From Carpediemonas membranifera BICM (lineage: Eukaryota; Protista; Fornicata), in the NCBI GenBank assembly GCA_019828565.1, contig JAHDYR010000067.1:214243-278242 (forward strand): 64,000 nucleotides of DNA. Direction: 5' to 3'. The translations under genes and the position numbers were made by a program. The notes beneath the pieces were generated by a model. The model was given only the letters and a program-made list of their open reading frames with translations, searched no databases and was not told where the DNA came from. Below are positions 7,232 through 55,784 of the stretch, piece after piece. Position 1 is the stretch's first letter, and every line of letters starts with the position of its first letter.

Positions 7232-7484
7232 CCCGGGGTGAGAATCACAGCACCATCTAAACTTCTTCTTCTTCTCTACATGGAAAGTAACGTTACTGTG
7301 GTCTGTCTTAGGACACAAAAGGTTTTCAAGACTAAAGCTCGACACTCAAAGTGTCGAGATGGACCAATAAAGACCCTATTAAATGGAGGTATTTAATATT
7401 TAGCAAATATGGTTGCCGAAAGTTAAAATGACCTAACCTTCTTGCGCACTTTTAGCACTTTCTGAGCAGCTGAACTAGTAGCCA

Positions 7485-7965
7485 ATGCCGTGCAGTGTCT
7501 GCAAGCGCAATGGTCACAACCGCACATCGTGCCCGTTTAGACACCTGATTGAGCGTTCTGATGACAGGACACTCCTCTCCGTCATGCAGGACTTGGTTGA
7601 ACGGAATGCGATCGCAAAGGAACTGCCTGTGGAGCGAGTGGCTTCATGGGCAGTTCAAATACTGAATGGTAACAGCTTCACATCTTTCTCTTTACACAGG
7701 AACCGCCTCTTTCGATGATCCGCCCACCGGCCTTTGCTCTCCGGCCAGTCCGCAGTATGTGGCCCCCGACCGCCAGAGGGAGCGAGATATAGGCGTCCAG
7801 CAAGCACGCCCGCATCAAGATTACTTGTCTGTTCCAGTCCCGGCCGCCAGACTGATGGAGGTCTACACTCTCCTTGCGTCAGTTCCACCCCAGGAGACAG
7901 TGGCTGCAACACCATCTATCAGCCAGTCTCTCGGCCCCTCCGAGAGCCTCTTCCCAGACGAATAA
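7485..7965 (+). pseudogene. Zinc-knuckle ORF (CSVCKRNGHNRTSC), probably frameshifted and transposon-associated
   Basis: CX2CX4HX4C at the N-terminus of 7485-7718; overlapping ORF 7666-7965. Confidence 0.4.
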
Positions 7966-7985
7966 ACACTTGTTCCTGATGATCT

Positions 7986-8625: not shown

Positions 8626-8649
8626 ATCGATAACGACATTGAGCTAATC

Positions 8650-9040: not shown

Positions 9041-11445
9041 CGTCCAGCTCGGGGTGCTCCAGGTCTACTGCAGGCGGCTCTACAGGTTGATCTCCACTGG
9101 CCGGGCGGGTACTGGCACGACCGACACAGTGGCGGCCATGCCTCTACGTCTGAAACCCCACCCCTCTTCGTCGACCTCGGTGTAGTGATTGTTTATTTGA
9201 GTTTTGTCCTCTTCTGAGGTTTACTCTAAATTCCACTTCTCCTTTGCTTCAGTGTTTCACCACAGTTATAACTGGATCCAATGAATACCGAAGCTCTTTC
9301 CCAATTCCTGGCACCATACCTTAAGAAGACGTCCCAAAAAGCCTGGACGACATTCCGCGAGGAATACTTGGCTTATACAGCACGCGCAACAACTCCAATC
9401 CCCATCCACCAGCTCATCGCTCCCTCCGTCCTCGCAATCTTCTGCCTTCGTGATCCCCAGCTCGAAAGAGTGATCCACAACTCCATCACTCAGAGAATCT
9501 TCGAGGCTGAAGAGGCCAACAACGAGGAACCGGGCAACCTGCTCGCTCACGACGACGCAAGCGATGACAGCGAAGGATCCGACACCGAAGAATCCTCCGA
9601 TTCCGAGGAGGAAATCGTCGTTGATCCCATTCCCCACGGGGATATCGACTACAACGAGGTGATAATGAACGAGATCGATGAGATCTTCGCTCCACTCGAT
9701 ACCCAAGACGCTCTGGACCGCATCGCAGCTGTCTATTTCCAGCCGACTGATGACCTGTAGCAGCCTGTAATCGGCCGTAGATTCACAGTTCACTGCGATC
9801 AGAGAAACTTGCAGTGGATGGAGACTTCGGAGAACCCAAAAGTCGTCAGGTGGCGCCAAGCCTTGGACGGATTCGACTTCAAGGTCATACACGTTCCTGG
9901 TTCAGAGAACGGCGCAGCAGATGCTCTTTCGAGAGTCGTTGCCATATCCTGCGCAGACGCCGACGCAGAAAATCACCATGATGCAATTCAACGCGCACAC
10001 TGCGCAACTCGTGGCCATCAAGGCGTTACGGCTACAATTAACCGCCTAATACAAGACAATTGCTCCTGGAAAGGCATGGCAAGCGACGTTAAGGCATTTA
10101 TCAGCCAATGTCCCGTTTGTCAGCTCGCGAAGGGAAACATGAAGCCACCAGTACAGTTCAGGCATCCTACACACGGCGAGTATCCATTCCAAGTGGTACA
10201 AATCGACGCTATCGGACCTATGACGGAGATCGACGAGTTTTCCCATGCACTCGTCGTAATCGACACCTTTTCGAAGCTCCTTCAGGCATAACCGATCAAG
10301 AACACCTCATCCAGCGAGGCCATCAGAGTTCTTGACACCTTCTTTGGACACTACGGCTTCCCGAGCAGGATCTCATGTGATGGCGCCAGCCAGTTCACGT
10401 CCAAGGAGTTCCGCGACCACGCAGACCAATGCAACATCGCCCTAGAGATCGGCACACCGTACCATCCCGCCGGCCGAGGGATAGTTGAGCGCGCTAACCG
10501 CGAGGTTAAGAAGCATCTCCACGCGCTCGCTCTCGAGGCCGAATAACATTGGGTCAACAACATGCCCATCGCTGTAGACATCATCAACAACACCCCATTC
10601 ACTCGCTCAGGCGTATCACCGTTCCGTATGCTCTTCCACCGAGACGCACCAGTCGGCGAGCCCGACGACTCTATGGCGGAGCTGCTTAAGAAGTTCGCCG
10701 AGCAGACCACGCTGGCGAGACAGAAGCACGCAGCGCACCTTCCCCAAGCTGAACCAGTGTGGTTCGTTTGACGAACTATGTTTACAAGAGGAGAAGACTC
10801 GACACAATGGTGTCGAGGAGAAACTCCTTGACTAACTAATATCATATATAAATCTGTGTAATCTTGGGTGAGACCCATGACACTGCCCCTCCATGCCTCA
10901 ATGAGGCATGACCCCAGACAGCGTGAGCTTTGACGGCTGGCTACTGCCAGTGGGGGTGAATGTTGGCTCTTGGGGGCCGGTCCTGGTGGGTGCCAACCAC
11001 CGATCGAGCCCCTTTTTTGCGACCTTGGCGGGGACACAACAAGAAGCACAACGACGTGCAAAATAGCACAGCTTACAATCGCGCGGTACCGCTGGGTTAG
11101 AAGGATCCTACCATAGGGGTTCTGCCCCTCCTCGGCTTTTCCTCGCCGAAAATCGAAATGTGACGTACCTTAAAATGCTTGGGTGCAGGTTATGGCCATC
11201 CAAGCACAACGATGGTGAAACACCGCCCCTTTCCAACTGTTTGCGCCATTAATCAGGTTGGTGCTGAAAATGGCATTTTCAGGCCTCAACGAGGCCTCTA
11301 CGGCGAGATACGAGCCTTTTTCTTTGCAGCGTGAATTCACACCACGACTACGCTCAGATAGAGCTACTAAACGACTAAACAACATCAAGACAACAATAAA
11401 GAGATCATAACTCCATGTTTGAGCGGCTTTCCATTCGGGATTGGG

Positions 11446-12567
11446 ATGTTTCATTTTGCACCAATCTTGGTGCAAATGGTGACGGAACATTTGGGGGAAT
11501 TGGCGCGGTTGCTGCAGCTAGTAGCTTCTGAGGAATCTGATGATCCTCGAATGCGTTCTCTGCAGCGCCGTTGTGCAACATTGGGCTCCGACATCCAAAA
11601 TCTGCGATCGTCACGCGTAGCGCCGGGCAACAGGAGGCGCAAGAGGCTTGTGCGCCGTCCCGTGTGTCACTCAGAGCCCGCTTCGTCGGTAGACGAGAGC
11701 TCGAACGATGACAGCGAAGAAGACGAATCGCCGACTTCTTCGGACGATGCCCCGGGGAATGACAGCTCCCCAACGCTGCCAGACGGCCAGCCCGAAGCCA
11801 ACCAGCCTGCTGACGTGACTACTACGGTTCGCCAGCTCTCCCACGCCTCAGGAACGGACGTTTCGGACTTGAACCGGCTGGTCCATCGGCTGTTGGGCGA
11901 GCACGCCCATTCGATTGCTCTAACACTCACCCCGCTTATGAATTCTCTCCGTGAACAGCGGTTCGAGCGTGAGTTCTCCCTCGAAGACGTCGAACGCCAA
12001 CTTAAGGGTGTTTCTTGTGCGCGTCGCGTGTTGCTCGATCTTCAGGCCTTCATGAAACTTGCCCAGGCACTACCTGAACTGGACCTGCATCGCGCCGCCA
12101 CTTGGCACCATGAGATGGACGCTATCCGACGCAAGCTCCCTGGTAGGGGTGACAAGTCCCTCTGCCACCTCCTGGCCTTAGCCGTCTTCCCGGGAGTCTA
12201 TGGTTTGCTTCAAGAGGCTTGCTACCGGTCCTCTGATATACCGGAGATGGAGAAGCGATTCCGCTTGGTCATGCGGGTATTCAAAGCCCATCCACAGTGG
12301 GTACCGGTACTCATGACTACGGGCGACGGAGGGCTCCAGTTCACTGATGAGCTCCGTACTTATCGACTGGAACGAGTTGTTGGCAGTCGCAATGGCCCGG
12401 GTGGTCGACTCCTCACGTTGAAATGGGAAGACTACAGGTTTGTGACACGGTCGTACCCGACGCCGGAGTTGCTAGAATTGCCTGAAGTGGTAGCGCACCT
12501 TGCTCGTCACGGGGTTGAACCGCGCAGTACTGGACCTGCCTTCGCTGGTCGGGGCCGCCGACTCTAA
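11446..12567 (+). CDS. Antisense accessory ORF inside E3; unknown protein with acidic low-complexity tract and C-terminal chromodomain-like segment
   Basis: Uninterrupted ~373-codon ORF from the first ATG, converging on the pol stop; YRLERVVGSR...LTLKWEDY..TRSY. Confidence 0.7.
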   Translation: MFHFAPILVQMVTEHLGELARLLQLVASEESDDPRMRSLQRRCATLGSDIQNLRSSRVAPGNRRRKRLVRRPVCHSEPASSVDESSNDDSEEDESPTSSDDAPGNDSSPTLPDGQPEANQPADVTTTVRQLSHASGTDVSDLNRLVHRLLGEHAHSIALTLTPLMNSLREQRFEREFSLEDVERQLKGVSCARRVLLDLQAFMKLAQALPELDLHRAATWHHEMDAIRRKLPGRGDKSLCHLLALAVFPGVYGLLQEACYRSSDIPEMEKRFRLVMRVFKAHPQWVPVLMTTGDGGLQFTDELRTYRLERVVGSRNGPGGRLLTLKWEDYRFVTRSYPTPELLELPEVVAHLARHGVEPRSTGPAFAGRGRRL

Positions 12568-12610
12568 CAACTAATCAACAATAAATCAGGCGAGATGAGA
12601 ATAGGAGGGT

Positions 12611-15600
12611 TTACAACCCTTCCGACTTGGCCTGAGCAGACGACAAGAAGTCATCCAGAGCAGCAGCGTCTCTAAGGGAGCGGTATGGCTCCCAGGTAGC
12701 CTCGGAGTCTTCAAATCCTTGCCAATGGACAAGGTACTCTCTCTTTGAGACCGAGCCCGTGCCACGCGACTTGGATATCCGGTCGATATACCACTCCTCC
12801 ACGCCGGCGGCCGCCACCTGCTTGATCTGTTCCTCTGATAGGGTGCCGGGGACGAACTTTCTGACGCGAGACGCATCGACCCGGATGGGTTCCGCTCCGG
12901 GCTGACCTAAGTCTTTCACCATGTAGGCTACTACAACACCGCTCTGCTTGACAGACGACACTCGTCGCATAGGCCCAATCTCCAGCCCGGGGAAAGCTTG
13001 TTTGGAGGGCGCGAGGGATATTTCACGAGCACAAACCGTGACAAGATCTCCGTGCGGGTGGTGGAGGCCTTCGCCAACGCGTCTTCGCGCATGGCCAGGA
13101 CACGTGCCTTGGCCAATTGTGTAGCGGCTTCGGCAGCGAGGAGATGCGACGTACGAGCTGCTGCCGTGCTGTTCTCGGTAACGTATAACTACTCCGGCAC
13201 CGCCATGTTGCTCCCGAACAGTATCTCGGCGGGGGAAAGGCGTGTTGGTTGTCTTGGCATGGAATTGACAATAAACTGCGCAACCGGTAAATGCTGACGC
13301 CAATTGCCGTTTCTGAGCTCAAACTTCCTTGCCTTGAGCACTCTCTCGACCATCTGGTTAGCTCTCTCAACCATTCCGTTGGACTGAGGGTGATGCGCGG
13401 TGGTAACGTGTGTCTCGAACCCCATGTCCTGTGCCAGCTTCTTCATGAGAGCGTTATTGAACTCGGGACCTCCGTCAGACTGCAGCACTCGTGGGCAACC
13501 GTAACGCAGCACCCATGTGTTGACGAAGGCATCCACGGCATCGCGTGCGGTGGTAGACTTGACGGGGGCTAGCTCCGTCCACCTGGAACACATGTCTATC
13601 ATGACTTGGACGTATTTGTAGCCGTCACGCTCCGGGAGCGGACCTAGAGTATCGATTGCCACCCGCTGGAACGGTGCATCCACAGCCGTGTGTAGACCGT
13701 CTGTTTTTTCAACAGGCGGTCTCTCCAAGACCTGGCAGACAGGGCACTTGGCGACGTAGTCGTAAACGTCACGGCGAGTAACTGAAACACCGGCTTCCCG
13801 CAAACGTTCCATGGTTAACCGTCCGGAGAGGTGGGCGTTACCGAACGGGTGGGCTTTGCTGATCTCATCAACTGACGCTAGCGAGAATACGCGCGACAGA
13901 CCGTCGGCTCCCCCGTTGTCTAAACCGGCCACGTGCTTCAATTCGAAATCTAGGTCTGCAATAGAATCGGCCCATCTACGCACCTTAGCGTTACTCGACC
14001 TATACATGTACAAGAGGTTGCGATGGTCGGTCAGGAGCTCGAATCTCTCCCAGGACAAGAACTTCCTCCACTTCTGAAGGGCTGACACAATCGCAAAGGC
14101 TTCCTTCTCGCCGACACTCCATCTGGATTGGACGTCTGTGAAGGCTTTGGACATATAACACACGGGGCGACCCTCCTGCAGGAGGACAGCCCCGTACCCC
14201 ACGTCGGATGCGTCAGTCATCACGACATGAGGTTTGGTCGCGTCGAACATCGCCAAAGAATCTGCCGAGCACAAGGCTTCTTTGATATCCGCTAGGGCAG
14301 CCTCTAGCTCTTTCTCTGGCACGGCCGTACGGTTAGTCGTTGCAGACACGAGTGGTTTGGCGCGGGTCGCGTAGTTCGGTACGAAGTCGCGGAAGTAGTT
14401 AAAGAATCCGACTAGACCTTGCATCCCCTTGACTGTAGGCGACAGCTTCATGTCTTGGATATCGTTGACTCTCTCTGGTGAGATCCTGACTGACCCCTCG
14501 GAGATGATCCAGCCGAGGAACTCCACCTCGGCCCGACCGAACTGACACTTGTCCCTTCCGAGCTGGAGCTTGTACTCACGGGCGCGCTGGAGGACCTTCC
14601 TCAGGTTCTCGATGTATTCCTCTGGCGTGGCACCCATGACGATCACGTCGTCGATGTAAATGATGCAGGCGGTCCCAAGTAGCCCTCTGAACGCGTTTTC
14701 CATCGCTCTCTGAAAGAAAGCACCGGCATTGCGAAGCCCAAAGGGCATCCGTGTATATTGGAACTGGCCGAAGGTAGTCCTGAACGCGGTATACTTCCGG
14801 CAACGCTCAGTAAGGGCGATCTGGTGGTAGCCGGCAGACAGATCGAGCGTTGCGAACACTCGCTTACCCGAAAGTTGTGTGATAACTTCGTCAATTCGAG
14901 GGATGGGGTAATCAAATGGCTCTGTCATGGTGTTGACTTCACGAAAGTCGACGACAAAGCGAGTCTTGCCACCCTTCTTGGGTACGATGATAGTTGGGCT
15001 GGAATAGGCCGATTGACACGCCTGTATATACCTCTTGGCCAGAAGGGTATCGATGTGTTCCTTGACAACCGGGACCTTTGGGGGCGGAACATAGTAGGGA
15101 CGTACGTGGACGACTCGATCGCCCTTGAGGCATAGGTCGTAGGGCTCGAGCTTGCTCGGTTCAGTACGGTCACGGAAGAGGTCTTCGTACTCCTTGAGCA
15201 GCTTGATCTGCTGGCTCGCGATACCATCGGGGAGGGTAAGAGCCTTAGCTTCAAACTTGCTCGGGACGGGAGGATCGTCAGTTGCTTCGCTCTCCGAGTT
15301 GCTAGGCTGGGCCATTGAGGGCAGCAGTCCGATCTCTACCATCTGGCTGTAACCAAAACTGACTTCGTACGCAGTTTTGAGAACGAAAGCGCGGATCTTC
15401 AGCTCGCAGCCACGTGGCGTGAAGGGAGATGGCCTCAACGTGATCTGCACCGATACGGTGCCTTCAGCTTCTCGTATTCCACCTGCCGTTTGGATGCGTA
15501 CAGTATCGTGGTTGATCCTGGTAACGGCTGGCGAGGAGCACAGATCGGGAGATATCGTGGCACAGTCAGCACCAGAGTCTAGTAAGACCTTCACTTCGGC

Positions 15601-16651
15601 CTTCTCGATGACTCCATTGACTACAGGCAACGACCCTCCACCTGACGCAGCGGAAAATAAACACTTCGCCCCGTTTACTGGGGACTTAAAACGACAGAAC
15701 TTCTCGAGGTGACCCTGCTTCTTGCAAACCGGGCATGTGGCACGATCCCGCGGGCACTTGAAGGATGGATGGCCCGTCTCGCCGCAGTTGTAGCACACCA
15801 GCTCGCGCTTGCCCTCTCCTCGTTGGTTCGGGGGCTCTTGCGGCTGGCTTATCCTGATGATGAGGCTTGGCGATTGGCTTGGGGGCGGGATGGGTGGGTT
15901 CGTGGTGAAGACCGCGATGGGGTTTGCCCGACTTAGCCTTGGTTGACGACTGCTTGTCGGTCATTCCGATGGAACGCAGCATGGCACGGGATTCCTCGAT
16001 ATCGCGAGCGATATCAATCACCCGCGGCATAGCCAGTTCGAGGGAGAAGCCTTCGGTGAGATCCTTAACCTTGTACTGAACGCGCGAATTATCGGGTAGC
16101 TTAAAGCAACGCGCGTAGGTGTCGCAGAGGATCTCAGAGTCTACCCCGGGATCAACAAGGGAGAGGAGGGTTCTGAACCGTCGGTTCACTCGAACCACCT
16201 CCTGCGGAGTAAAGGACGAGATGGAGAGACGGAACAAGTCGAGACGGGCAGAAAAACGGGACGGTTGCAGTGCTCTACCGAGCCGCTTGAGGACGCGGTC
16301 GTCTTTAGCGAGACGCTTGGCCTTGCGCTTACGCTTGTGCGTCTTTCGGACAGCTGCGGTTAGGATGAGGGACTGCTGGAGGGGTTGCTCGTCGTCTTTA
16401 GGCGTTCCGGCTACTGGTGAACCTTCATCGTTCACGGGGACAGAGGCCTCGGCCGAGGGGATGGCTTCAGAGGCCTTGGCGAAGAGGTTAAAGCCGAGAG
16501 CGTCAGCGTACCGTTGGACTTCGGTGTCAATCATGTCGGCAACGTCGGCATCACCGCCTTTGGCTCGGTACTCGGACAAATCCTCGGCGAATCGGACTAA
16601 CGACTCAATGGTCGTCTTCTTTAGCATAGGCATATTGTTATAGAGCGTCAT
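12611..16651 (-). pseudogene. E3 Gag-Pol (2 CCHC knuckles, PR LDSGA, RT YIDD, RH, IN, chromodomain) with two frameshifts and an in-frame TAG
   Basis: Extra base in a C run near 15833; TAG at 13189-13191; shift near 12975; ORFs 15686-16654, 13189-15798 and 12611-13303. Confidence 0.92.
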
Positions 16652-17322
16652 CAAAACGTGGAATACTAGTATTGTGGTTCGTTTGACGAACTATGTTTAC
16701 AAGAGGAGAAGACTCGACACAATGGTGTCGAGGAGAAACTCCTTGACTAACTAATATCATATATAAATCTGTGTAATCTTGGGTGAGACCCATGACACCA
16801 GGCCCTCACCACGACAAGTCCATCGTCGGCAAAGCAGCCATGGTCCGCACCTACACCCGCGTAGGCTACAAGCAGCGCGGCCCCGTCCGAGTTGTTGGTG
16901 TGAGCACCAAGCCCAACACGTACAGCCTGCATGACCCGACCACGGAGACATCATTCGTGGCTCACGCAGACAGCATCCTCCAGTTCCAGGGCGACTACAC
17001 CGACGACGAGCTAAAACACTGGGCGCTGAAACTCGCAAGAGAGTATGAGGTAGACCAGATCGTGGGCCACCGCACCCAAGACGGGACCCTTCAGTTCAAG
17101 ATCCGCTGGCTCGGGTACACAAGCGAGGACGACTCCTGGGAGAACTACACACGCGAGATCAACAAGCTAGAAGCACTAGACATTTACCTTGAACAACACC
17201 CACACCTCAAGCCGACCCTGGCAGCCCAACGTAAGCGGAAATCATACATCAGATAATCGAGATTATGGGGGCTGGGCACGATATCCGCGACATCCACGTG
17301 TGACCGTTTCTTACTTTCCGGG

Positions 17323-20165: not shown

Positions 20166-23018
20166 CTAGCTATTGGGGTCGAAGAACGTGGGAGGCATGC
20201 TGCTCGCCACCTCGGTGGGCTGGGCCACTGGCATGTCGGGCATGAACATCCCCTCCCCGGGCATGCCCGCGTCTATGGTCTCAAACGACGGCACGGCCGC
20301 GGTATACCGGCTGACGCCAGCTAGGCCGCGTCGACGACCCGCTGGCCGACGGCGTCCCTCGGAGTTGCCACCGCCGACAACAGGCTCGGGGAGTGGGGCT
20401 GCCGAAAGTGGGGCGTCAAATGGCGAGGGTGGGGCCGCGTGGCTGGAGGCAGAGACTGACCCGGGGAGATCATACATTGGCGGGCCGGCCGGCACGGCGT
20501 TGAACTCCCCCATGTCTGAGGGCGGAGGGATAGACACGCTCACACCAGGCACGGGCGGGGCGGTACTCACGCCGCCGGGGGGCGGGGGAGGTCCGTCGGT
20601 CTCGCCGGATAGAGGAACGCCGTTGGCATCCACCCATGTCTCGCCGTTGAAGGTGAACTGCATGTCCTCGCCGAGATCTGCCTCAACGGGGCGCATGCGG
20701 CTGAACAGACGCGAGAGGGTGCTCTCCTTGCGTGCCTTTTTCGGCTTCTCCTTTTTCTCTTTCTTCGGCTTTTCCTTCTTTTCCTTAGGCTTGTCTGAGT
20801 CAACCGAGGGTCTGCGAGAGGTAGGAACTGACTGGGTCGCCCCAGGAATGGTCAGCACTGGGGCATGCGAGATGGCCGACGATGACGACCCGCGCCCCTC
20901 GTCGTCGCTCCCGGCAGCCCAAGCGATGGTCTTTTGGGCGAGCTGGCGGCCCTTGTCAATGAAGCTGATGTTCCTGCTCATCGCCTGTCCGTCCTTGCGC
21001 GACAGGATGGACGCGACCTTTTCCTGTCCCATCGAAGTGGCAATGAGCTCCACAATCGACTGGGATCTGCGGTAGAGCGCGACCATGGCGCCTGTGGCCT
21101 TTTCGATGCTCCCACCGGGCACCTTGATGCCAAGGGGGAAGTGGGCCGTCTTACCCTGTGCCGCCTCGTCGTCAAAGGTCAGGCTCGCCCCAGCCTTGAG
21201 CTGAGCTTGCACGTCTCCCGGGAGATAAGCGAAGACCTGATCTCTCACGGCCTTGGCGTAGAGCAGCGCGATGCCGGGCATGCCATGGTCGAAGAAGAGA
21301 AGGGCCAGCGCGGCCAGGAACGGCATGAGGTACGGGGGGACGCGGAGCTCCTCGTCCGCCGACAGGTGGTGGAACGCCTCGGCGAGAAGCACGCTGAGCA
21401 CGGACACGCCCTCGAGGGCAGGGGCGTTGGCGAACAGCAGGGAGCCGGTCATGTGCTTCTCACGGCCGACATTGTCTCTGAACAACCCGCGGTGATCACT
21501 ACCGGGGAAGCCGATCCTGTCCGAGCCCCCGCCGCCCGTGGGCAGGCCCATGCCCGCCTTAGTCACCAGGCGTAGGAAGTGCGCCGCGGCGAGTCGGTTC
21601 CCGTTGATGAGTTCATTTTGGATCCTGTCGAGCACCTCGATCTTGTACTCGGGCGACGACCGAGACTTGACCAGGACAGCAACGTTGCCACGCCAGTTAG
21701 CAGCGAGCGGACCCGGCTGGTTCGTGAGCTTCGTGCGGCCCGTCTTGTGCGCCATCATCAGATACAGCGCCCTCAGCGGGCTCCCCACGGCCAGCGTCTC
21801 AGCGTACTCCACGATGGTGTCGTAGCAGTTGTTCTCGGCCTCCTGGTCCGTGATGAGGGATGACAGCAGTATGGCGTGCGACCACAGGCCCTCCGCCTTC
21901 GCCCTGCCGACCGCCTCGCTGAGGTCGCCGTGCATGGCGAGCTCCTGGACCTTGGCCACGGAAGCGGGCGAGAGGACGTGGGCCTGACTCGCCGCCTTGG
22001 CGACTGAGTCGGGAGTGGCTGGGGCAGGGGCGGACGAGGCAGAGAGGGCGTCGAGTACCCGCTTGAGCAGGGTGGCGCGGGCCTCCTTCTTCTTGTCGTT
22101 GGTCTCCACACTCGGTGTGACGACTGCACTCGGCGTGAGCTTCGTCTCCACACAGGCCGCGGCCAGGCGCCACAGCATGACGCTGTCCCCGACGGCCCCG
22201 CTCATGTGCTCGCCGCTCGTCTGCTGGGAGAGACTGTCTGCCAGGCGGGGCACGACGGACTGTGGGCTGCTGTGGATGGGCACTTTCATCGTGTCGAGCC
22301 CAAAGATGGTGGGCACACCGTCGACAGTGCGTCTGAGATATGCGCTGGGGCCGAGCTGAGTGAAGCCGTTAGAGCGGGTCATGACAAGCCGACCGCCAGC
22401 GCCGAATCTGATCCGGAATCTGACTGGTACGGAAGATGGGCGCGGAACGGAGGCAGGAGAGTTTGCCACGAACGTCGACGGCATGCTTGGCATGGTCTGG
22501 CGTGCATGAGGGGGCATAGGGCTGGGGATGAGTGGGGAGGGGCTTGTCTCCGCCTGGACCGGTGCTGGGGCGAAGATGTCCTCGGGCACAGCGTCAAATG
22601 AGGGCTCGGGAACAGGCATGGTGGTCGATGGGGCGTTGACAACGTCGGCTGGTGCTGGGGCGAAGATGTCCTCGGGCACAGCGTCAAATGAGGGCTCAGG
22701 AACAGGAATGGTGGTCGATGGGGCGTTGACAACGTCGGCTGGTGCTGGAGCGAAGATGTCCTCGGGCACAGCGTCAAATGAGGGCTCAGGAACAGGAATG
22801 GTGGTCGATGGGGCGTTGACAACGTCGGCTGGTGCTGGGGCGAAGATGTCCTCGGGCACAGCGTCAAATGAGGGCTCAGGAACAGGAATGGTGGTCGATG
22901 GGGCGTTGACAACGTCGGCTGGTGCTGGGGCGAAGAATCCGTCAGTGTTTGGAACAATAGTAGGTTCTACTGGGCCAATATCGGCCACAGTATCGAAGAA
23001 GGAGATGTCATCGTCCAT
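20166..23018 (-). CDS. SEC16: COPII scaffold Sec16-like protein
   Basis: Central-domain motifs WSHAILLS, GSPLRALY, NWRGNVA, AAAHF; EADLGEDMQFTF..W motif; Pro-rich termini. Confidence 0.85.
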   Translation of the reverse strand: MDDDISFFDTVADIGPVEPTIVPNTDGFFAPAPADVVNAPSTTIPVPEPSFDAVPEDIFAPAPADVVNAPSTTIPVPEPSFDAVPEDIFAPAPADVVNAPSTTIPVPEPSFDAVPEDIFAPAPADVVNAPSTTMPVPEPSFDAVPEDIFAPAPVQAETSPSPLIPSPMPPHARQTMPSMPSTFVANSPASVPRPSSVPVRFRIRFGAGGRLVMTRSNGFTQLGPSAYLRRTVDGVPTIFGLDTMKVPIHSSPQSVVPRLADSLSQQTSGEHMSGAVGDSVMLWRLAAACVETKLTPSAVVTPSVETNDKKKEARATLLKRVLDALSASSAPAPATPDSVAKAASQAHVLSPASVAKVQELAMHGDLSEAVGRAKAEGLWSHAILLSSLITDQEAENNCYDTIVEYAETLAVGSPLRALYLMMAHKTGRTKLTNQPGPLAANWRGNVAVLVKSRSSPEYKIEVLDRIQNELINGNRLAAAHFLRLVTKAGMGLPTGGGGSDRIGFPGSDHRGLFRDNVGREKHMTGSLLFANAPALEGVSVLSVLLAEAFHHLSADEELRVPPYLMPFLAALALLFFDHGMPGIALLYAKAVRDQVFAYLPGDVQAQLKAGASLTFDDEAAQGKTAHFPLGIKVPGGSIEKATGAMVALYRRSQSIVELIATSMGQEKVASILSRKDGQAMSRNISFIDKGRQLAQKTIAWAAGSDDEGRGSSSSAISHAPVLTIPGATQSVPTSRRPSVDSDKPKEKKEKPKKEKKEKPKKARKESTLSRLFSRMRPVEADLGEDMQFTFNGETWVDANGVPLSGETDGPPPPPGGVSTAPPVPGVSVSIPPPSDMGEFNAVPAGPPMYDLPGSVSASSHAAPPSPFDAPLSAAPLPEPVVGGGNSEGRRRPAGRRRGLAGVSRYTAAVPSFETIDAGMPGEGMFMPDMPVAQPTEVASSMPPTFFDPNS
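22561..22936 (-). repeat. Coding tandem repeat, ~4 x 90 bp (PAPADVVNAPSTTIPVPEPSFDAVPEDIFA)
   Basis: Near-identical 90-bp units visible in the DNA. Confidence 0.97.
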
Positions 23019-23037
23019 TTTTGGCCGATGATCGTGA

Positions 23038-26000
23038 TGTAGCACGACATAAACTGCATCCTGTCTTTTAGTTCACACAGTGCCACAGAAGCTTCTACAG
23101 CATCAAGAACACATGGACAAGACTATTGAGCCGCCCGACACTGCGGATATCGCAAAATGGGCCGCTTGGGGCGATGCAATTCAGACGCAAGCCCAAACGA
23201 AGAAGAAACCCACGCCCCTGAGAGGACACCTCACTGGCGCTGGCGAGAAGGTTATACACACCATATATAGACCCAACGTGCCCTATATCACGCTCAAGGG
23301 CACCGAGCTGAAACATCAATCCGGTCCTCAGAAGTTCCTCCAACGGCTGGGTGACGAAATTGAGGAGTTCCTCTCCAAGCCTCTCACGACCACGTCAGCA
23401 GATACACGACACACTCAGTCACAAATAGAGAATCTACAGGCCCTCATCGCCATGTCGGAAGAGGACGAGACCCTCAAGGACGAAGTGGGACCCATGAAGG
23501 CGGAACTCAGAACCCTACGGATGGAGCTCCGTCAGAAGCTCAAGACCGCCAACGCCTCCTCCTCCACTAACACGACTAATATGACACTCTCCCAGGCCAT
23601 CTGCAGACAAGTACAAAACTTCATGCAGTGGTTCCGCTTGAGTGCAAGCATTGGAGATGAGAAGTGCAAAGCCGCACTCAGGGCACTGTCCCGCCCTGGT
23701 CCACGCAGGACGCGCCAGGAGGCGCTCTCAGCAATCCTCACCTACCTGGCCGAGTTCGAGCGACTTTATACGCTCCTATACCCTCCTGACGACTCAGATG
23801 AGACACCACAACTATCCACGGACTTGTGCATCGAGATCAAAACGATCCTTGTCCACGCCATGGATCACCTCGACGCCAGGAGCCTGGAGCAGCTCCTAGG
23901 CACGTCCGATCATCGCATCCACAGGGCGAGTGAAAGCGTCAGCACCCTCATCAACGCCATGCGCGATAACGCGATTCTCGCTAAGGAGAAGGCGGAGTTT
24001 ATCGAGCCCCTATACACATTTGATCATGCCAGACCGACAGCCGCCGAGGCGAGGAAGCCCGGCCAGGGCCCAGTCCAGCCCGCTGGCTCGTCCGGCAAGT
24101 CATGCGCGTTCCACCTGAGCAAGACGCACACCACGGCGGACTGTACCGTCTGTAAGCAGCTGACCGACAAGACCGTCCAGAACCCGGACGTTACCGATGC
24201 CCAGTTGCTCTCTCATTATGCCACCTGCCATAAGCACGGGAAGAAACCTTACGGCCCGGCCAAGGCGCTATTCGATAAGCGCAAGCTGAAGGAGCCGGCC
24301 TATGGGACTGCCGCCGCGACCGTCAAGCGTGCCCCGCGGCCCGGCAAGGTTTCCTTCATCCCTGACGATCAAGTCGAGCCCCTCATGACCGACATGCCCG
24401 AGAGCACCATGGTCTATCAGGCTCTCATGCAAGCCGAATCCAAGGGCAAGGCCATCGTCGTGCGCCTGGACACGGCGAACGAGCAGTTCCCGATCCTCAT
24501 GCGCCCCGACGCGGCGGAGTACCTTGGCCTTACAGTCACGCCCGAGCGCGGCGACGTCAATGGTTGGAAGGCTGTCCATGGAGAATACGTGGGCACCACA
24601 CGCTTCACGCCGATCATCTCGCAGCCCTATTTCGACATACCCGTCCGCGCTGCCGAGCCCCTCGCGGCTTATATCGTAGAGGACCTACCTGTCGCTGTGC
24701 TATACGGCACCGTTGCCCTCCGCGCAGTGGGTATGGACTTCCTCAAGAACAACCGGGCCAAGCCCGAGTCGACCCCATCCATGACGAAAGATCCTACGGA
24801 CTTCCGCTCATTGTTCAACCTCTTCATCAGGTCACCCGGAGAGTCAACCCCGACACTCCCAACTATATACGATGAGAACCTCGGCTCGCTCGCCGAGCAG
24901 TTCCATGCGCTCGTGGTAGAGTACGCCGACATCTTCGGCCCGTTCGACGAGCAAGGCTCCGATCTGCCACCCTTTGAGATACACCTCAAGCCCGACGTCC
25001 TCCCCTCCCAGGTTCTACGCCCGATCAGAAATAAGGCGCAGAAGGACGCCATGCGGCTCTTCATTGATGACATGCTGGCCAAGAACATCATCTCGGCAAC
25101 GACCGACACCCTCGACTGGCTGTCGCCCGTATTTATGGTGGACAAGCCGTCCGCTACACCCCCGTTCCGGCCCGTGTTAGATTACCGAGCCCTCAATGAC
25201 GCTACGCGCCCTGAGATTTACACCATGCCCACAGCAGATGAACTGTTCGAGCAATGCAGAGGTGCCGAGGTTTTTGCCTCATTCGACCTCACCGCTGGCT
25301 TTCACCAGCTCGTTATGGACCCAGACTCAGCCAAACTGACAGGCTTCGAGTTCGACGACGTCCGTTATATCTTTAACAGGCTTCCGTTCGGTGTCACCAA
25401 CGGCCCCATGGCGTTCCAGAAACGCATTGACGACCTACGCCGCCAGTATAAGCTCCCATGCCTGGCGTTTGTAGACGATATACTGTGCTTCGCTGGCTCT
25501 GTCCAGCAGCTCCTCGATGTCCTCCGCGAGCTATTCCCTGTCCTCCAGCAGCACCGCATACGCCTCTCTGGTCGGAAATCGCACATCGGACTGAAGGAGA
25601 TCGTCTATCTGGGTTGCCTCGTCAGCGGCACCGGTGTCCGCATCGACCCTGCCCGCGTCGAGAGCATACATAAGCTCAGCACCCCTCGCACTGCCAAGAT
25701 GGCCCATCACATTGTCGGCATCTTCGGCTTTGTGAGGAGGCACATCCCAGATTTCATCCGCCTCGCCGCACCGCTCGAAGCACTGAAGAACGGTGAGACC
25801 GTCGAGCCGGAGCAGCTCGAGTGGGCTATGACCAGCCTCAAGCAAGCTGTCGCCAGACAGATCGAGCTGACGCACTTCGACCCCAACAGCCGCGTGGACC
25901 TCTATACTGACGCCTCAACCACCGGCATTGGCGCAGTGCTTATGCAGGGCGACCGCCCTCTCGCGTTCTACTCCAGGCGCTTCGACAAGCAACAACAGGT

Positions 26001-27677: not shown

Positions 27678-27928
27678 TCGTGATGATGGTCATAAAGTGC
27701 GATGCGTCGCCCGTAGCCAAGGCAACACGCCAGGAGTGGCACTGATGCTTCCCTGTAGATCCATTCAGTCAACCCGGCTCTGATTTAGTCATCTGCCAAC
27801 AGTGCGACGCCCTCATCCTGAGAACCCCTCTGCTCGTCACATGTGCCGACTGTTCTTCGACCTGTTTCCCGTGGAGGACAGCCCCCAAGAGTCATCAAGT
27901 GGCACAGCCCCCTTCACTCTTGTCTAAT

Positions 27929-45570: not shown

Positions 45571-45707
45571 GGCGTCTTTAATTGATATATGGTAGACCAG
45601 CGATGCTTATAAATAAGTCCATCAGCAGATTATGACTGCCATTCCATGCTAGCATGCTTGCCAAGTACTTTAAGGGGCGGCTACTACTTTACACGGCGGG
45701 CGGTGGC

Positions 45708-46814: not shown

Positions 46815-47112
46815 TCTGACGATTTTTGTCACTAATCTGCACTTTCGCCTTGGTCCCTCTGGACCTGATACGTCAGTAGTGTGCCAGATGAGCAGTAGTG
46901 CGGGTCCTTATGTGTCTCAAGGTATCAACAAGTTTCACTGAGCCTTGACTTTGGAATTGAGGAATGTGCGCTCCAGTGAACAAGATGTCTGCCTTAAGGA
47001 CACGATCAGCATGTCAGCGCGAGATGGTATGAGGCCCTTAGCCTTGTGGACAGGTGAACGCGCCACACGCTGTTTCGTCAGATTTGCTCACGTTTGTCTG
47101 AGAGAGCGAATT

Positions 47113-48195: not shown

Positions 48196-51100
48196 ATACG
48201 GATAAGGCACAGGTTAGTTGGGCTTTTAATCTTTGGTGGTGACACACGCTCGGCTGGCTGGCTGTCTTGAACTTGCCCTGATCATAAAATAAAAGGGGTC
48301 AGGCCAGACCGTGGTTTGGCATCCCAAAGCAGAGATAGACGGAGATGCAGATGTTGGTGATAACAACGATAAATGCTGTTGCTGGCCCCAATGCTGCTAA
48401 GTCTAACTAAGTTGCTCCTGAGACATGGTTCTTGCTGATGTACCTTACCTTACCTTACATTTTCTTGAGTCGGGCTAACACACTTATTGGCATCATTTCT
48501 CGACTCCATTGGACAGAGTCATGTGGCGATGGTATCGGCTTCAGGAAGATCGCGGCAGGGTCAGCTCATTATGGCGTGAGAGCTTGCCTGGTGGAAGGCG
48601 AATGATATGCAGATCCGAGCGATCGCAGTGCCGAGTTACGTATAGCAGACAGAAAATTGTCCGAGTTAGTGACCGAGTGACACAAGACGACAGGGCGGCC
48701 ATGATGCAAGGAAGCGGGCTAGGCTATATCGCAGTGGAGTTCGGCCTCTGAACAAACGCAAGGTTGGGCGGTGAGAGCCAGTGCAGTTTATGTAAACAGA
48801 TCTACCTGCGCAAGCCAACAATGGCACAATATCGATATTCTGCTTCTACAGAATCACACAGTGGTCTATCCGTGATAGACGTCTCTTCCCTCACAACGGG
48901 GTACGAGATCTGGTTACGGGAAGTCGGTAACGTCAAAAGACCCCGTTCTTTCCCCCACGCATTCACGGCAAAGACCCTCGAGCTTCTACAAGCCACATGG
49001 CGGCCCACCTCCACGTTCCCGACCTTCGAGTCGTTCTGGGACTCCCTTATCCCTGACGTGGTCTCGCAGGCACAACACGCCAAGCAAGAACCTGACAGAC
49101 ACGCCACGTCGTGCCGCGCAAGATACCGCGCGATCATCGACGCTCTGCAGGACGATCTCTTCTTGCTCTGTGCTGCAGCCGCCAACACCTATAAGGACAG
49201 CCCGCTTCTCGACCCGGCGATGCGCCGGATGCAGGCTGTTTACGACCGCGCCGAGGCCGAGCTGAACGATAAGCTCGCCAGCCTCTGCACGGCCAGCCAC
49301 GACCGCCACGAGGCGGACCCGGATGCGACCCTCACCTTCGCGACGCTAACGAACCCCCTGGACGACAAACCGGCCCGATCGGCCGCGGATGTCGCGAGAA
49401 TCGTCAACTCTCTCCCGTCAGCGGCAACGGCCGCCCCCTCCGCCCCCGTGTCCGTGCGTGACCAGCTTCGCGCCGAGGCCAGGACCATCCTGCCTCACCT
49501 GTACCTTACCCTGATGCCAACACTCGACCGCGGTGCACGCCTCAAGGCCATCACAAGCAAGGGCACCCAACTGTACGGCCAGAACGCGGCCCACCGCCTT
49601 AACACTCTGCGCCTGCAGAAGGCGTGCGACGGGTACAACCCCGTCGTCGAGGCCGATGGCTACCATAAGATCCCCGACAGCGCCCTCCGCGCTGCGGTCC
49701 GGTCTGTCGCCCTCAAGGGATACGACGACGACGCGATCCCGCTATACGAGGCGCTGATCGAGCGGGATTCGGACGGCAACTGGCGTCCCGCCCGCGACTG
49801 CATAGACGCCCTCTCGACCCTCGAGACCGACCATCTCGGCCAGATCGTCGTCCCCTGGCAGGCCTATGCCGTGTCGACCAAGACGAAGCCGATCCCGGCC
49901 GACAACAAGGCACCGCATGATAACAGTCAGTGCTCGAACAAGGACACCTCTGCTCGCGAGGGCCAGCCGCTGAAGCCGAAGGCCCACAAGGTCGAAGGCC
50001 AGGACCCGTTCAAGCAGTTTAAGGACAAGGAGCATTTCTACATCCCGAAGTCTTTCAATCGCTGGTGTGACAGGCATGGCTGGAACTCAAAGCATACAAC
50101 CAAGGACTGCGGAGCGAACCAACGCGATGGCGCCGTCGGCGAGGTCCAAACGACCTCCATTCCCATACAGACAACCGTAACGGTCGCCGGAACCGTCCAA
50201 CTTCCAGCCAAGCTCGACACTGGCGCAGATGTCTGCGTCATATCCGAGCACCTCGCCCCAAAGATACCAGGAAACATCCAATGGCGCGAGTCGGACCTCC
50301 GCCTGTTCGCCGCGGACGACCGCGTTATCTCCGCGGGCAAGATCGCCACCATGTCCATCACACTCCCTGGCATGGATGGCAAAACCGTCACGCTCGACTG
50401 GGACGTCCACATGATCACAGGCACCAGCGACAGGATGCTGATCGGCAAGGACCTCCTCAGGCACATCGGCTACGTCCTCAACGACCGCCTACTGATACTC
50501 CCGTCCGAGAAGCCGGATGATAAGGACGATCTAGAAGAGCACAACATGATCGACGCCGACGTCTTCGAAGCGGCGTCAACCTCGGACTCGAAGCATTCGC
50601 TCGCCGTCACGATCCCGGACGACCACGGCACCGAGTTCGCCAACAAGGTCCGAAGCATCGTCGAGGAGTTCGATGAGGTGTTCGACCCGGCTCTCCCGCC
50701 CGAAGGCAGCAAACTACAGCCTCACAAGATCGAACTCACACGCGATTTTCACCTCAAGTGCCGTCCTCGACAGCTTGTCGGAGAGGCTGGCTCAGCCGCC
50801 CTCTCCGAGATCGAGAAGATGAAGAAGCTCGGCATCATACGAGACAGCCAGTCCGAGCACGCCAGCCGCCACACGATGGCAACCAAGAAGAACGGCGAAC
50901 CCCGCTTCTGCGTCGCATTCAACGATCTTAACGACGCCACGAAGGACGACGCCTTTCCCCTCCCCGATCTGAGGGACCTGCCCCACGAAGCCGGCGGATG
51001 CTCTTACTTTGCATCACTCGATCTCCGGTCCGGATACTGGCAGCAGCTGATGGAGCCGGCCAGCATCCCCCTTACCTCGTTCGTAGTCCCCGGGCACCAA

Positions 51101-51757
51101 TTCGAGTTCCTCAGGGTCCCGTTTGGACTTAAGAACGCCCCCTCCAAGTTTCAACGAGCGATGGAGGCCGTGCTAGATGGCATCCCCGGCCACCGGGTCT
51201 ACGTGGATGACATATTCCTCTACGCACGGACCGAAGAAGGATTCCTCAACACCCTGAGACTCACCCTCCAGAGAGCCAAGGACAACCGCCTGCGCCTCCG
51301 TGCGGACAAATGTACCATCGGCGCCGCCGAAGTGGAGGTCTGCGGATTCATCATCAACAGCTCCGGCCGCTCGGTGAGCCCAGGCCGCGTCGCCGCGCTG
51401 AAGGAGCTGCCCGCCCCCACCACCGTCACAGAGCTCAGACGCACGATGGGCAAGTTTAACCACCTCGCAAACTACCTCCCGCAACTCAGCTCAGCCACAG
51501 CCCCCCTCAACGCCCTCCTCAAGGGGTCACCCAAGAAGCTAGACAAGCTCCCTTGGACTGAGGAACACGACAAGGCATTCGCGGCTCTGAAGGAGCTGTG
51601 CACCGACAACAAGGCATTGGCACTACCCAACCTGACCTGCAAGTGGACACTTGAGACAGACGCGTCCACAATCGCAGCCGGCGGAGTGCTGTGGCAACAC
51701 GAGGGCGACACGAAGAAACCCCTCGCGTACTTCTCAAAGACGTTCACAGAGACCCAA

Positions 51758-54700
51758 TGTGATCTTGTCGAGGTTAAAGGTTTCAAAACAAACTGTTTAT
51801 AGGGTTCGCACGTGTAGTTGGTACCCTAAACTGCTCACACTTCCCCTCTAAAGGTGCAGCTCCGGGTGAGCCTCGGCATAAATGTCGAGGGCTTCGAGGT
51901 CGCGGACCTCGTGGTACGGGAGCCACTCATCGGCGCCTGGGTAGCCATCCCAGGCGACGAGGAATTCGAGGGTAGACTTCGTGGGGCCACCACGGTGGCG
52001 GGTGATGGCCTCGACTTCGTAGGTGTCGTCGTCAAGGGAGGCGACGGTGATGTCATCGAAGGCCAGGGGAGTCGTCGTACTCCACGAGCCGGGAACCGTG
52101 ATACTGGAAGGTGGCGCCGGCAGTGGGGTTGTGTACGGTGTAGATGTCGTGCTCGCGGTCAGTGATCGTGTATGGGCCAACGAGCTTAGTAGACAGCTTG
52201 GTGGGGCGCTTCGAAGGGCGCGTGACAAGCACCTTCGAGCCAATAGGAAGGGGCTCGTCGCCGAAAGCCGGACGTTTCGAGAGGACGTTCTCTTGGTGCT
52301 GGCGTGCTGTCTCAATGAGCTTGGGCTGGGCCTGGAGAACACGGCTAAAGAAGCGGCCGTATTCACTCTTCTCCTCCCTCAACGTGGGCGTCGGACGACA
52401 GGAAGGGGGTGACGTTCTGTGAAGCGAACATGAGCTGTGCGGGGGCAATGCCCGTGGTGGCACATATCGTGGTGTTCATGATCCGCTGGACGACTGGGAG
52501 GTAAAGGGACCAGTTGTTAACGTCGCGCAGCTCCTGAGTGATGGTACGTAGGTGTCGTGAGAGCTCGGCGTTAGCTCTTTCGACGAGCCCGTTGGCTCTG
52601 GGGTGGTATGGAAGAGAGACAACGTGTTGGGCGCCGAAGAGCTTAATGAGCTGTTGGAAAGCGGTGGCAAGGTACTGAGAACCGCGATCACTTCGGAAAG
52701 AAGACGGAGTACCGTAGCGTCCCGTGACGGAGATAAGAGCGCGAAGGGCCTCTGCAGAAGAAGCATCCTTGCATGGGACCAGCTCTACGAAGCGTGTGAA
52801 GGTGTCAATGAAGGTGATAACGTAGCGGCATCCGTTGGAGTCTGCAGGATAAGGCCCGACCGTATCAAACGCCCAGCAGGAGCGTGGGGTGACGCCCATG
52901 GTAGGGCGGAGGCCTGTCTGAAGGCGCTTGGGAAGTCTGGCGTTCTTCTGACATATCGGGCAAGCCTTGATATACTCGGCGACAGCGTTGCTCATTCCAC
53001 GGAAGTCAAGGTTTCGTTCCTTAAGGAGGCGGAGTGTAGCCTCTCGGCCGAGGTGTCCCTCGACGGCATTGTGGACAGAGGCTATGATAAGTCGCTGGAG
53101 TGTAGGGGCATTCTCGGGGGGTTGGACGATGAAGCACCTGGATATGCCATCAGTGAGGGTGTTGGAGACGCCAGAGATGTGTTCAACGACAAAGTCGAAC
53201 TCTTGGAGTCTGAGGTTCCAGCGGACGACCTTGGGTGTGGTAGAACGGCGCATATAAACTAGGTTACGGTGGTCTGTCTGTATAGCGAACGAGTGGCCGA
53301 GGAGATAGGGGGAGTACTTCTCGACAACCGCGAAGAAGATGCCGAAGGCTTCCTTTTCGATGACAGCCCAGTTGCGCTCTGCGGTGGTGAATGCGTGGCT
53401 ACAGTAGGAGACTACGTGTTCAACGCCATCCTTGACGTTGAGGAGCACGCCTCCACAGCCAATGTCGCTAGCATCGGTGCGAACGATAATTGGGGGCAGA
53501 GTAGTCCAGGAAGGCTAAACACGGCGTGTGGGCGGCGAGGTTCTTGCTCTCTTCGAAAGCAGTCTGGGCCTCCTTTGTCCATTTCCACCGGACCTTCCCA
53601 GAGGTGAGGGCGTATAGTGGCTGTAGGATCGAGCTGAGGTTGGGGATGAACCTACGGAAATAATTCATCGCTCCACAGAAGGCCCGCGTGGTCTTGATGT
53701 CCTTAGGAGGAGCCATGGCCTGAACGGCCTTGACCCGGGCGGGGGACATGCGGATTCCCTCGGGGGAGATGATATGGCCGAGGTATTCCACCTGCTCAGC
53801 GTACAGACAGCACTTGCTGGGATGAAGGACGAAGCGATGTTCCTTGAGAACGGCAAGGATCTCAGCTAGGCGTGTAGCTAGTTCGTCCGTGGTTGATGCG
53901 TGAATGATGATGTCGTCTATGAAGACCTCGCACGTAGTTCCGACAAACTTGGAGAGCAATTGGGTCATGATGGCCTGGAAGGTAGCAGGAGCCGTTTTGA
54001 CGCCAAATGGAACGCGCGTATACTCATAAAGGCCGGTTGGAGTTGAAAACGCGGTTATCGGAATGGAACTTTCGGACAGTGGGATCTGGTGGTATCCACT
54101 AACGAGATCTAACGTCGCAAAGCAACGTTGGCCTGCGAGATGCGACATCAGCTCTTCTTGGTGTGCAAGTGGGAAACTGACTTGCTTGATGCGATCATTC
54201 GCCTGACGGTAGTCCACGACGAGGCGGCGGGCACCGCCCTTTTTGGGGACAGTAAAGACGGGTGCAGCCCAGGGAGAGCGTGAGGGGCGGACGATTCCTT
54301 GAGCAAGGAGCTCGTTCACCTGGTCATCAACCTCCTGCTGGATTGCAGGGGATAGACGACGCGGCGGTTGAGCAGCCGGTGTGGCGCCCTCAAGCAGCTC
54401 TATCTCCATAGGGGGAACGTCTGCTCCGTCTGGGTGGGGACGGCTGGTGAAGACTTCGGCATACTCATCATAGACGGCTCTGATGGCTGGCGGGAGGGCA
54501 GACGCGGTTGAACCTACGTCAGGGAGCTGCTCTCCTTCATCTAGGCGAGTGACGGGTGCGTGATCCTCATCGATCGTCTCCTCATCGGCCGTTGGGGCCA
54601 AGGAGAGGGAGAGATCTTGGATAGTGGAGTTTGAGAGGATCAGATCCTCCGACATAGAGGGGAGGATGTAGAATGGCCGAATGGAGCGAACGCCATCAAT

Positions 54701-55784
54701 GAGCATGGCAAGGAACACAGCTCTCTTGATGAAAACTGGACCGTTCGCGGTATCCAAACGAACGTTAGCGACGGCTGGAAGAGCGCCACGTTGGATAAAT
54801 GATTCGGCTATCGTGGGGGAGATGAGGTCAATAGTTGCACCAGTATCAAGTACTGCACAGACCTCTGTGGCAGTACTCTCGTTGATGGGAACATAGAGAG
54901 TGGCTTGGCGACAGATGAGGCCGTCGTGATCAGTGGCGGCCAGATTCGCCTTTTCGCGCTTGACTGGCGGACCCTGGATGGGAGTCTTGCGCACGCCAGA
55001 GCGGAAGAAATCTCTGTGTCCTTGATAGGGACAGTTGGGGCGGATGTGGCCCGTATGGCCACAGCCGTGGCAGGGGGCAGACGATCGTTGGGGTAGTCTA
55101 GCCCCAGCGGCGGCGCCGGGAGTCGGGCGCTTACCAGCTGGCTGGGCCGGTTCCGGCTGCAGGAGCGACTGGAGGTTAAGGAGTTCCTCCAGTTCATCAA
55201 TGGCGTGGTCCTGCGCCTCTGCGACGTCATCTGGCTGCTCCATGCGGATACGCTCCGCAAGAGGATCTGGAAGTGCCTGCAGGTATGCCTTCACCATTAG
55301 CTTCTCTGGTGGTGTGACGTCGGCTGTGAACGAGCTCCGGATAGTTTCGAAGCGTTCGATATGGTTGAGAAGCTGTGCAGGCGTTGATAAGGGGCCTGTT
55401 CGGGCGCACCGCAGCGACTTCAGCTTGGCTAGTGCTTGAACGTTACTGCGGGGGCTATAGAATGTTTGGTAGACTGTGTCCAAGACAGTATCCGCCGGAA
55501 GATCGGCCGGATTGTCGTTGAGACGGCGTGTGATGAGAAGAAGAGGCGTAGGATCCATCAGGGCAGTCGGATGGAGAAGAGGATCGTCAAGGCGTTGAGC
55601 TCGGTACGCACGGTAGGACGATCGGAACTTGGTGAACGCCTGTTCTTCTAGTGTTAGTAAGAAAGGTCTTGGTATGTAGTCGGACATTAGATGAGTGTAC
55701 ACTGTGATCTTGTCGAGGTTAAAGGTTTCAAAACAAACTGTTTATAGGGTTCGCACGTGTAGTTGGTACCCTAAACTGCTCACA
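51758..55784 (-). mobile_element. Gypsy element E6 with identical 82-bp LTRs, nested in E5
   Basis: LTRs at 51758-51839 and 55703-55784; TSD CCAA; PPT (plus-strand CTTCCCCTC) at 51840-51848. Confidence 0.97.
51848..55687 (-). pseudogene. E6 Gag-Pol (CCHC, PR, RT FIDD, RH, IN, chromodomain) with several frameshifts
   Basis: ORFs 53468-55702, 52363-53448, 52053-52463 and 51848-52366. Confidence 0.92.

Follow-up and report, generated by a model that had tools for sequence, protein, structure and literature searches.

A deep branch of compact Ty3/gypsy elements in Carpediemonas membranifera and environmental microbes probably primes DNA synthesis with its own paired RNA

Introduction

How does a retrotransposon begin DNA synthesis when a palindrome occupies the place of its tRNA primer-binding site (PBS)? 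This question is raised by a stretch of 64,000 nt from Carpediemonas membranifera BICM (contig JAHDYR010000067.1, positions 214,243 to 278,242; hereafter the window), in which Ty3/gypsy elements carry a short perfect palindrome at the inner end of the 5′ long terminal repeat (LTR). The established priming modes of LTR elements are the use of host tRNAs and self-priming of the Tf1 type. A first reading of the bare sequence, here called the original prediction, had pointed out seven such junctions and proposed that two element RNAs pair through the palindrome. We followed this proposal through the window, the remaining genome and related elements in other assemblies. The comparisons indicate that a deep branch of compact gypsy elements, present in Carpediemonas membranifera and in many environmental microbes, probably primes DNA synthesis with its own RNA, paired with a second copy.

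Results

Eight 5′ LTR/internal junctions can be defined in the window, and each of them carries a perfect palindrome. The original prediction had placed seven on the correct coordinates and strands and had missed one (4322–4333). At the seven junctions CAC precedes the palindrome, which gives the LTR a ..CACA end whose final A is also the first base of the palindrome; none of them shows the TGG start of a tRNA PBS. For four junctions the LTR ends are fixed independently, as had been claimed, by LTR pairs found in a self-comparison of the window, by purine tracts ahead of the 3′ LTRs (AGGGGGGA, GAGGAGGGAA, AGAGGGGAA and GGAGGGGCA) and by target duplications of 4–6 bp. No palindrome follows the 3′ LTR in any of these four LTR-paired elements.

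The first of the four is a complete minus-strand element (10758–16798) with 126-nt LTRs (16673–16798 and 10758–10883; 100% identical), a CTG(G) target duplication, a purine tract at 10884–10892 and protease, reverse transcriptase (RT), RNase H and integrase domains; its palindrome is AATACTAGTATT (16662–16673). A second complete element, on the plus strand (23037–27677), has 51-nt LTRs (23037–23087 and 27627–27677; 100% identical), palindrome AGAAGCTTCT at 23087–23096 and a purine tract at 27619–27626. Its stop-free frame (23080–27603) spans 1507 codons, the first ATG, 16 nt past the palindrome, opens a 1426-codon open reading frame (ORF), and copies of 99–100% identity exist elsewhere in the genome. 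The plus-strand element at 48771–57484, with 58-nt LTRs (48771–48828 and 57427–57484; 100% identical), palindrome AATATCGATATT at 48828–48839 and a purine tract at 57417–57426, is interrupted by a nested minus-strand element (51758–55785). The latter has LTRs of about 83 nt (55703–55785 and 51758–51840; 99% identical), palindrome AGTGTACACT at 55694–55703, a purine tract at 51841–51849, a TTG(G) target duplication and ORFs for RT (53471–55702) and integrase (52366–53448). In the interrupted element the LTR already contains the first in-frame gag-pol ATG (48821), yet the palindrome keeps its place at the LTR edge, which ties it to the LTR end rather than to the start codon. If ATG 48821 is the start codon, this palindrome would be translated.

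The other four junctions belong to less complete copies. Palindrome AGTAGATCTACT (4322–4333, minus) lies in a nested element, is preceded by ..CACCAC and is followed by an ATG 4 nt later; the LTR-like stretch upstream contains a CTCGACAC..GTGTCGA hairpin and a TAAAC motif. Palindrome AGTAACGTTACT (7286–7297, minus) marks the 5′ LTR end of element E1, immediately after which a LINE-like sequence has inserted (about 4657–7278; ORF 5122–6114 with a weak RT match; 13-nt target duplication CATGGAAAGTAAC at 4644 and 7279). When the flanks are joined without the LINE, the palindrome, TTCC, ATG and gag are re-formed; the duplication begins exactly at the centre of the palindrome. On the plus strand, AGTTATAACT (9264–9273; 12 nt counting the flanking C..G) is preceded by ..CACCAC and followed by an ATG 7 nt later, in an element with a pol fragment at 9767–10513 that is cut off by the insertion at 10758. 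Finally, AATACTAGTATT recurs at 33584–33595 (plus) in a truncated element, with an ATG 5 nt later and a preceding LTR-like stretch that ends in ..GACCACA and contains the hairpin and a TATAAAG motif.

Five ORFs in the window show the Pfam domain order protease, RT, RNase H, integrase that characterizes Ty3/gypsy elements, and the closest solved relative of pol is Ty3 Gag-Pol (7q5b, E 2e-116). A weak chromodomain match (PF00385) in ORF 55909–57396 reaches 21.9 bits, below the Pfam gathering score of 25.1 (E 1.6e-4); PF00385 is also listed for the relatives P0166, P0208, P0227, P0237 and P0239 and weakly for P0215. By domain order, chromodomain, TG..CA LTRs, polypurine tract and short target duplication, the window elements are best classed as Ty3/gypsy (Metaviridae) of the chromovirus type.

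In 261 kb, palindromes of at least 10 nt numbered 307 versus about 268 in shuffles, which is no overall enrichment; the non-random signal is the position of the palindromes, not their number. A first look at the genome gave 1529 pol candidates, and the sample taken from it comprised 20 element loci and 30 tRNA loci, with polymorphism within families read through pattern counts only. Among these 20 further pol-bearing loci, every element with an intact 5′ end has a perfect palindrome that starts on the terminal A of its LTR, so the expectation that intact copies elsewhere would share the feature held. Each palindrome is present once per element.

Pattern counts over the whole genome revealed how strictly the symmetry is kept. 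The pattern CCACAGTANNNNTACT (CCACAGTA-NNNN-TACT) has 117 matches (control, 1), and 98 of the 100 matches listed have a palindromic centre (CTAG, ATAT, ACGT, AGCT, TTAA or TCGA), compared with an expected 1/16; the two non-palindromic centres are singletons. These 117 matches have G..C at mirror positions 2 and 11; the corresponding pattern with A..T has 37 matches (CCACAATANNNNTATT; control, 1; centres CTAG and TCGA), the one with G..T has none (CCACAGTANNNNTATT; control, 0) and the one with A..C has a single match (CCACAATANNNNTACT; control, 0), which has the non-palindromic centre CCGT and is probably a decayed copy. A further pattern, CACAGTGNNNNCACT (AGTG-NNNN-CACT), gave 61 matches (control, 3) and further palindromic centres (AATT, TTAA and ACGT). 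Because the sequence has to equal its own reverse complement whatever its letters, the constraint appears to be pairing with another copy of the same strand.

Two repeats were considered as junctions and rejected. The CACAGTGCAAGCACT repeat (about 40 copies; 5+5 complementary arms around an A.A centre), which the CACAGTGNNNNCACT pattern picks up, for example at C13:615274-615291, has no copy with an ATG within 2–20 nt; non-autonomous elements or a repeat with no relation to these elements may account for it. Of the 22 copies of ACAGAAAGTTCT, the two that were checked, both on contig C39, have a AGTACTAGTACT-family junction at a distance of about 5.45 kb, and ACAGAAAGTTCT is probably internal to that family.

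The register of the palindrome could be read from copies that consist of an LTR alone. All 14 such copies of one family, whether 3′ or solo LTRs, end on the A, so the first base of the palindrome belongs to the LTR and coincides with the U5 boundary, as the 3′ end of a primer would set it. One AGTAATATTACT-family copy (L015; G000:C26:1002021-1011876, oriented position about 2680) has 100% identical LTRs and a 7-nt deletion (AGTAATA) that takes the last A of the LTR together with the left half of the palindrome.

To place these elements among their relatives, we turned to other assemblies. A word-based protein search returned, outside this genome, only distant gypsy elements (26–34% identity); three of these, examined as DNA, are devoid of the palindrome, and among them L021 shows a TGG-type site. 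An exhaustive profile search recovered gag-pol proteins encoded in a single ORF, some of which include a chromodomain. The seven relatives from other assemblies that were examined as DNA all carry a palindrome on the terminal A of the LTR, followed by an ATG within 5–15 nt: AATAACGTTATT (L054) and AGTAATATTACT (L055) in GCA_002919055.1, AGTGTTAACACT (L056) in a Logan assembly, AGTATTAATACT (L057) in a JGI metagenome, where the LTR pair measures 158 nt (100% identical), AGTGTCGACACT (L058) in an ENA assembly and AGAAAATTTTCT in two Logan assemblies (L059 and L060). The contigs of palindrome-bearing relatives range from 39 to 62% GC. Protein P0212 of Andalucia godoyi also matched the Carpediemonas pol profile strongly (578 bits). 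A metagenome scan added 80 loci, at least 15 of them with the signature; among loci with real flanking sequence after the 3′ LTR, L080, L082, L087 and L088 are palindromic (up to 18 nt), and L106, L111 and L140 have a TGG-type site.

In an unrooted tree built from 35 pol rows, the 29 palindrome-bearing elements lie on one side of a single branch and the six without on the other (SH-aLRT 96), and none of 500 label shuffles was as low as the observed split; a smaller tree of 18 rows had left monophyly unresolved. The distribution is compatible with a single origin of the palindrome in these elements, without proving it. The 29 elements carry 22 distinct palindromes of 8–18 nt, and on the tree half-site positions 2–5 changed at least 7, 9, 10 and 9 times, at least 35 changes in total, each of them mirrored in the other half. 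Palindromes are family-specific, and what is conserved is symmetry and register rather than sequence, in agreement with the original prediction.

This pattern bears on a reading at the DNA level, in which a dimeric protein such as integrase, a host factor or an endonuclease binds or cuts the palindrome as a symmetric site in double-stranded DNA. Palindromes are typical of such sites, one clade shows partial conservation of the outer bases A(G/A)TA..TA(C/T)T, and the LINE duplication described above starts at a palindrome centre. The diversity in sequence and length across the tree speaks against this reading, and integration is not known to involve the inner edge of the 5′ LTR. Half-site recognition is further argued against because the central 4 nt vary freely yet stay palindromic, a complementarity that such recognition does not demand. 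We therefore consider a DNA-level site quite improbable.

We then asked what the palindrome could pair with. Complementarity to tRNAs was limited to runs of at most 2 nt anchored on the tRNA 3′ end and internal matches of at most 7 nt, as in shuffles, when compared with 15 distinct host tRNAs plus CCA, an incomplete set; within this set, the palindromes match no tRNA. A Tf1-type complement in the LTR was likewise not found: for the palindrome plus 6 nt, the longest complement in the 100 nt upstream averaged 4.6 nt versus 4.9 nt after shuffling (27 junctions), which extends the earlier observation of no PBS complement within the LTR. An overlooked classical tRNA, half-tRNA or Tf1-type site would invoke mechanisms known for Ty3/gypsy and Ty1/copia elements (PMC6317226). 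Given the missing TGG start, matches to the 15 tRNAs at shuffle level and the lack of an LTR complement, and given that TGG-type sites were seen in relatives across the tree branch (L021, L106, L111 and L140) and are hence detectable when present, we regard this explanation as scarcely credible.

A palindrome in the same register is known from fungal GalEa elements (Ty1/copia), whose Conserved Hairpin Site fitted no known model according to its authors (Donnart et al. 2017, BMC Genomics 18:410, PMC5445492). As in the elements studied here, GalEa has no tRNA PBS, and the short sequence that follows its 5′ LTR forms a palindrome together with the terminal A of that LTR (ACTGATCAGT, ACTAATTAGT). 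The original prediction had left open whether such a site had been described, and GalEa supplies a partial precedent; for Ty3/gypsy nothing comparable was found in literature searches of incomplete coverage. In a hairpin in cis, as proposed for GalEa, the palindrome would pair with a nearby complement in the same RNA, and the shared register with GalEa CHSeq1, including the final A, speaks for it. GalEa, however, has a conserved CHSeq2 12–41 bp downstream, and the resulting hairpin contains an A/A mismatch, whereas none of our 27 junctions revealed such a partner: the best palindrome copy within 70 nt downstream was no better than in shuffles, and neither were complements in the 100 nt upstream. 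The palindrome alone folds with only 0 to −1.8 kcal/mol and occurs once per element. A cis hairpin is thus very improbable. As homoduplexes, by comparison, the palindromes reach −9.0 to −19.3 kcal/mol, and the AT-richer ones are longer. Because the site pairs only with itself, pairing in trans is implied, and the sequence comparisons make self-pairing in place of a tRNA site a well-supported reading.

Such pairing would also suit a palindrome that serves solely in dimer linkage or packaging, like the retroviral dimer initiation site (DIS) or Ty1 PAL, while another primer, for example a small RNA of the host, a fragment of a tRNA or some nicked RNA, starts synthesis. Leader palindromes are known dimerization signals in retroelements (PMC5445492, PMC5371799), the homoduplex energies are suitable, and our tRNA comparison was limited to 15 tRNAs, among which no match rose above shuffles. 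On the other side, the LTR ends on the first base of the palindrome in every family, so that any primer must anneal to a family-specific palindrome, and the leader between palindrome and ATG, at 4–16 nt in most junctions, is too short to hold a primer site of its own. We consider a dimer-linkage role alone unlikely, though it is the alternative that we take most seriously.

The LTRs themselves are compact, with 51–126 nt in the window and 43–126 nt in this genome. Several young families with 100% identical pairs have LTRs of 43–58 nt (43 nt in L010-L012), which is far below the limits of LTR finders and offers room for a minimal U3 and R only. Every LTR contains the motif T(G/A)TAAAC 18–37 nt before its end (e.g., 23048–23054 and 48791–48797), and host genes in the window carry NTAAA 5–25 nt past the stop codon. 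The NTAAA/TAAAC motif is probably a polyadenylation signal, and in the LTR it is perhaps also an initiator. LTRs of several families additionally share a hairpin, CTCGACAC-N4/5-GTGTCGAG, whose stem is conserved in sequence and does not covary; it lies within 16673–16798, 4334–4440 and 7298–7400 (all minus), within 33500–33530 and in the LTRs of L016-L019.

Public data for this organism comprised three small runs from 2017, with contigs of uncertain type that carry no information on ends, strand or joints. Over 22980–27740, two contigs cover 23058/23077–23582; they start just past the TAAAC motif and run through the palindrome into gag. A transcript start beside the motif together with a very short R would fit these contigs, which cannot show ends. 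In one contig (run X2), 24 letters that the genome does not contain, TCTGGACCTTGGCTGTCACTCAAA, precede the point at 23058 where it joins the LTR; they may represent an adaptor, a chimera or a leader.

Two further features of the window lie next to or within the elements. A 382-codon ORF without a Pfam match (11419–12567, plus) runs antisense within the minus-strand element at 10758–16798. A tandem array of 90-nt units (22471–23010) lies within a Sec16-like ORF (20166–23045, minus), a gene with the young element at 23037 immediately upstream of it.

Discussion

We propose that the palindrome is a primer site that replaces the tRNA site and acts when two copies of one plus-sense RNA sequence form Watson-Crick pairs, a reading whose chances we judge to be evenly balanced. 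Because the LTR stops on the base with which the palindrome opens, a minus-strand primer must end in the palindrome's own 3′ half. The simplest candidate, which we infer, is plus-strand leader RNA of the element itself that ends on the last or next-to-last base of the palindrome; this would be a symmetric counterpart, acting in trans, of Tf1 self-priming (PMC4600332).

In such a mechanism, two element RNAs, or two short 5′ leaders consisting of R, U5 and palindrome, would anneal antiparallel through the 8–18-nt palindrome. A 3′ hydroxyl would then be made at the 3′ edge of the palindrome or one base before it, either by an RNase H-type cut of the RNA duplex, as in Tf1, or by a short transcript. 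Work on Tf1 from the Levin laboratory reportedly found the RNA duplex to be cut to make the 3′ end of the primer. The new end would lie opposite the last A of the LTR and be extended through U5 and R of the partner, yielding minus-strand strong-stop DNA. The primer's copy of the palindrome would later be copied into plus-strand DNA, as the 18 nt of a tRNA are. An asymmetric mutation would thereby create a heteroduplex, and its resolution would either restore the original palindrome or yield a different one of equal perfection. Because the primer's palindrome would be copied back, an asymmetric mutation could not persist and both halves would change together. If true, this copy-back would explain why 22 or more different palindromes are all perfect. 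The terminal T of the palindrome is invariant and pairs with the terminal A of the LTR, a base that the chemistry of integrase requires, which suggests that the recognized duplex includes this A:U pair.

Several points weigh against this proposal. The nuclease step is hypothetical, and a scan of the window with Rfam yielded no family and hence no known ribozyme that might generate the 3′ end. A cut past the palindrome would strip cap and palindrome from the RNA concerned, so that an intact template or separate leader RNAs must be available as well. LTRs of 43–58 nt leave only a very short R. The contigs from the public runs show only starts inside the 5′ LTR and passage through the palindrome into gag. 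In addition, the tRNA comparison covered just 15 distinct tRNAs and no other host small RNAs, and the pol tree is unrooted, with few elements (6) that have no palindrome.

The nearest functional comparison is the self-priming of Tf1, Tf2, Tj1, sushi and Tcn1, which is independent of tRNA and uses the element's own RNA as primer in a duplex of about 11 bp (PMC4600332; PMC6317226). This duplex is similar in length to the palindromes described here. The Tf1 PBS, however, pairs in cis with the first bases of the mRNA, its complement lying inside the LTR, whereas the present elements have no such complement. In Ty3, initiation complexes dimerize via a 12-nt palindrome at the tRNA 5′ ends (PMC5371799); that palindrome resides in the tRNA primer, whereas here it resides in the element. 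The retroviral DIS is a short palindrome in a hairpin loop and is additional to a tRNA PBS, whereas here the palindrome occupies the primer position itself. GalEa, finally, is a copia element with integrase before RT, whereas the elements studied here are gypsy elements with integrase after RNase H. Two sequences cover 85% of GalEa families, compared with the 22 or more palindromes seen here, and GalEa LTRs measure 138–311 bp, compared with 43–170 nt here. Full-text literature searches of incomplete coverage turned up no account of palindromes as primer sites, either for Ty3/gypsy elements or for Carpediemonas.

More broadly, these elements might represent a third general priming mode, symmetric trans-priming by two leader copies, in which the palindrome serves as primer site, primer 3′ end and dimer linkage at once and both halves evolve in concert. 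Such a mode would define a deep chromovirus clade in diverse protists and may be convergent with GalEa. We offer this generalization tentatively, as somewhat less probable than not. It provides a testable explanation for the GalEa Conserved Hairpin Site, which has remained unexplained since 2017. Annotation tools that demand a tRNA PBS and LTRs of at least 100 nt will miss these elements, numerous as they are in this genome. A clade that has neither a tRNA site nor a Tf1-type site, and that carries a self-complementary sequence in the primer position, points to another solution to the priming problem, one that would link genome dimerization to priming.

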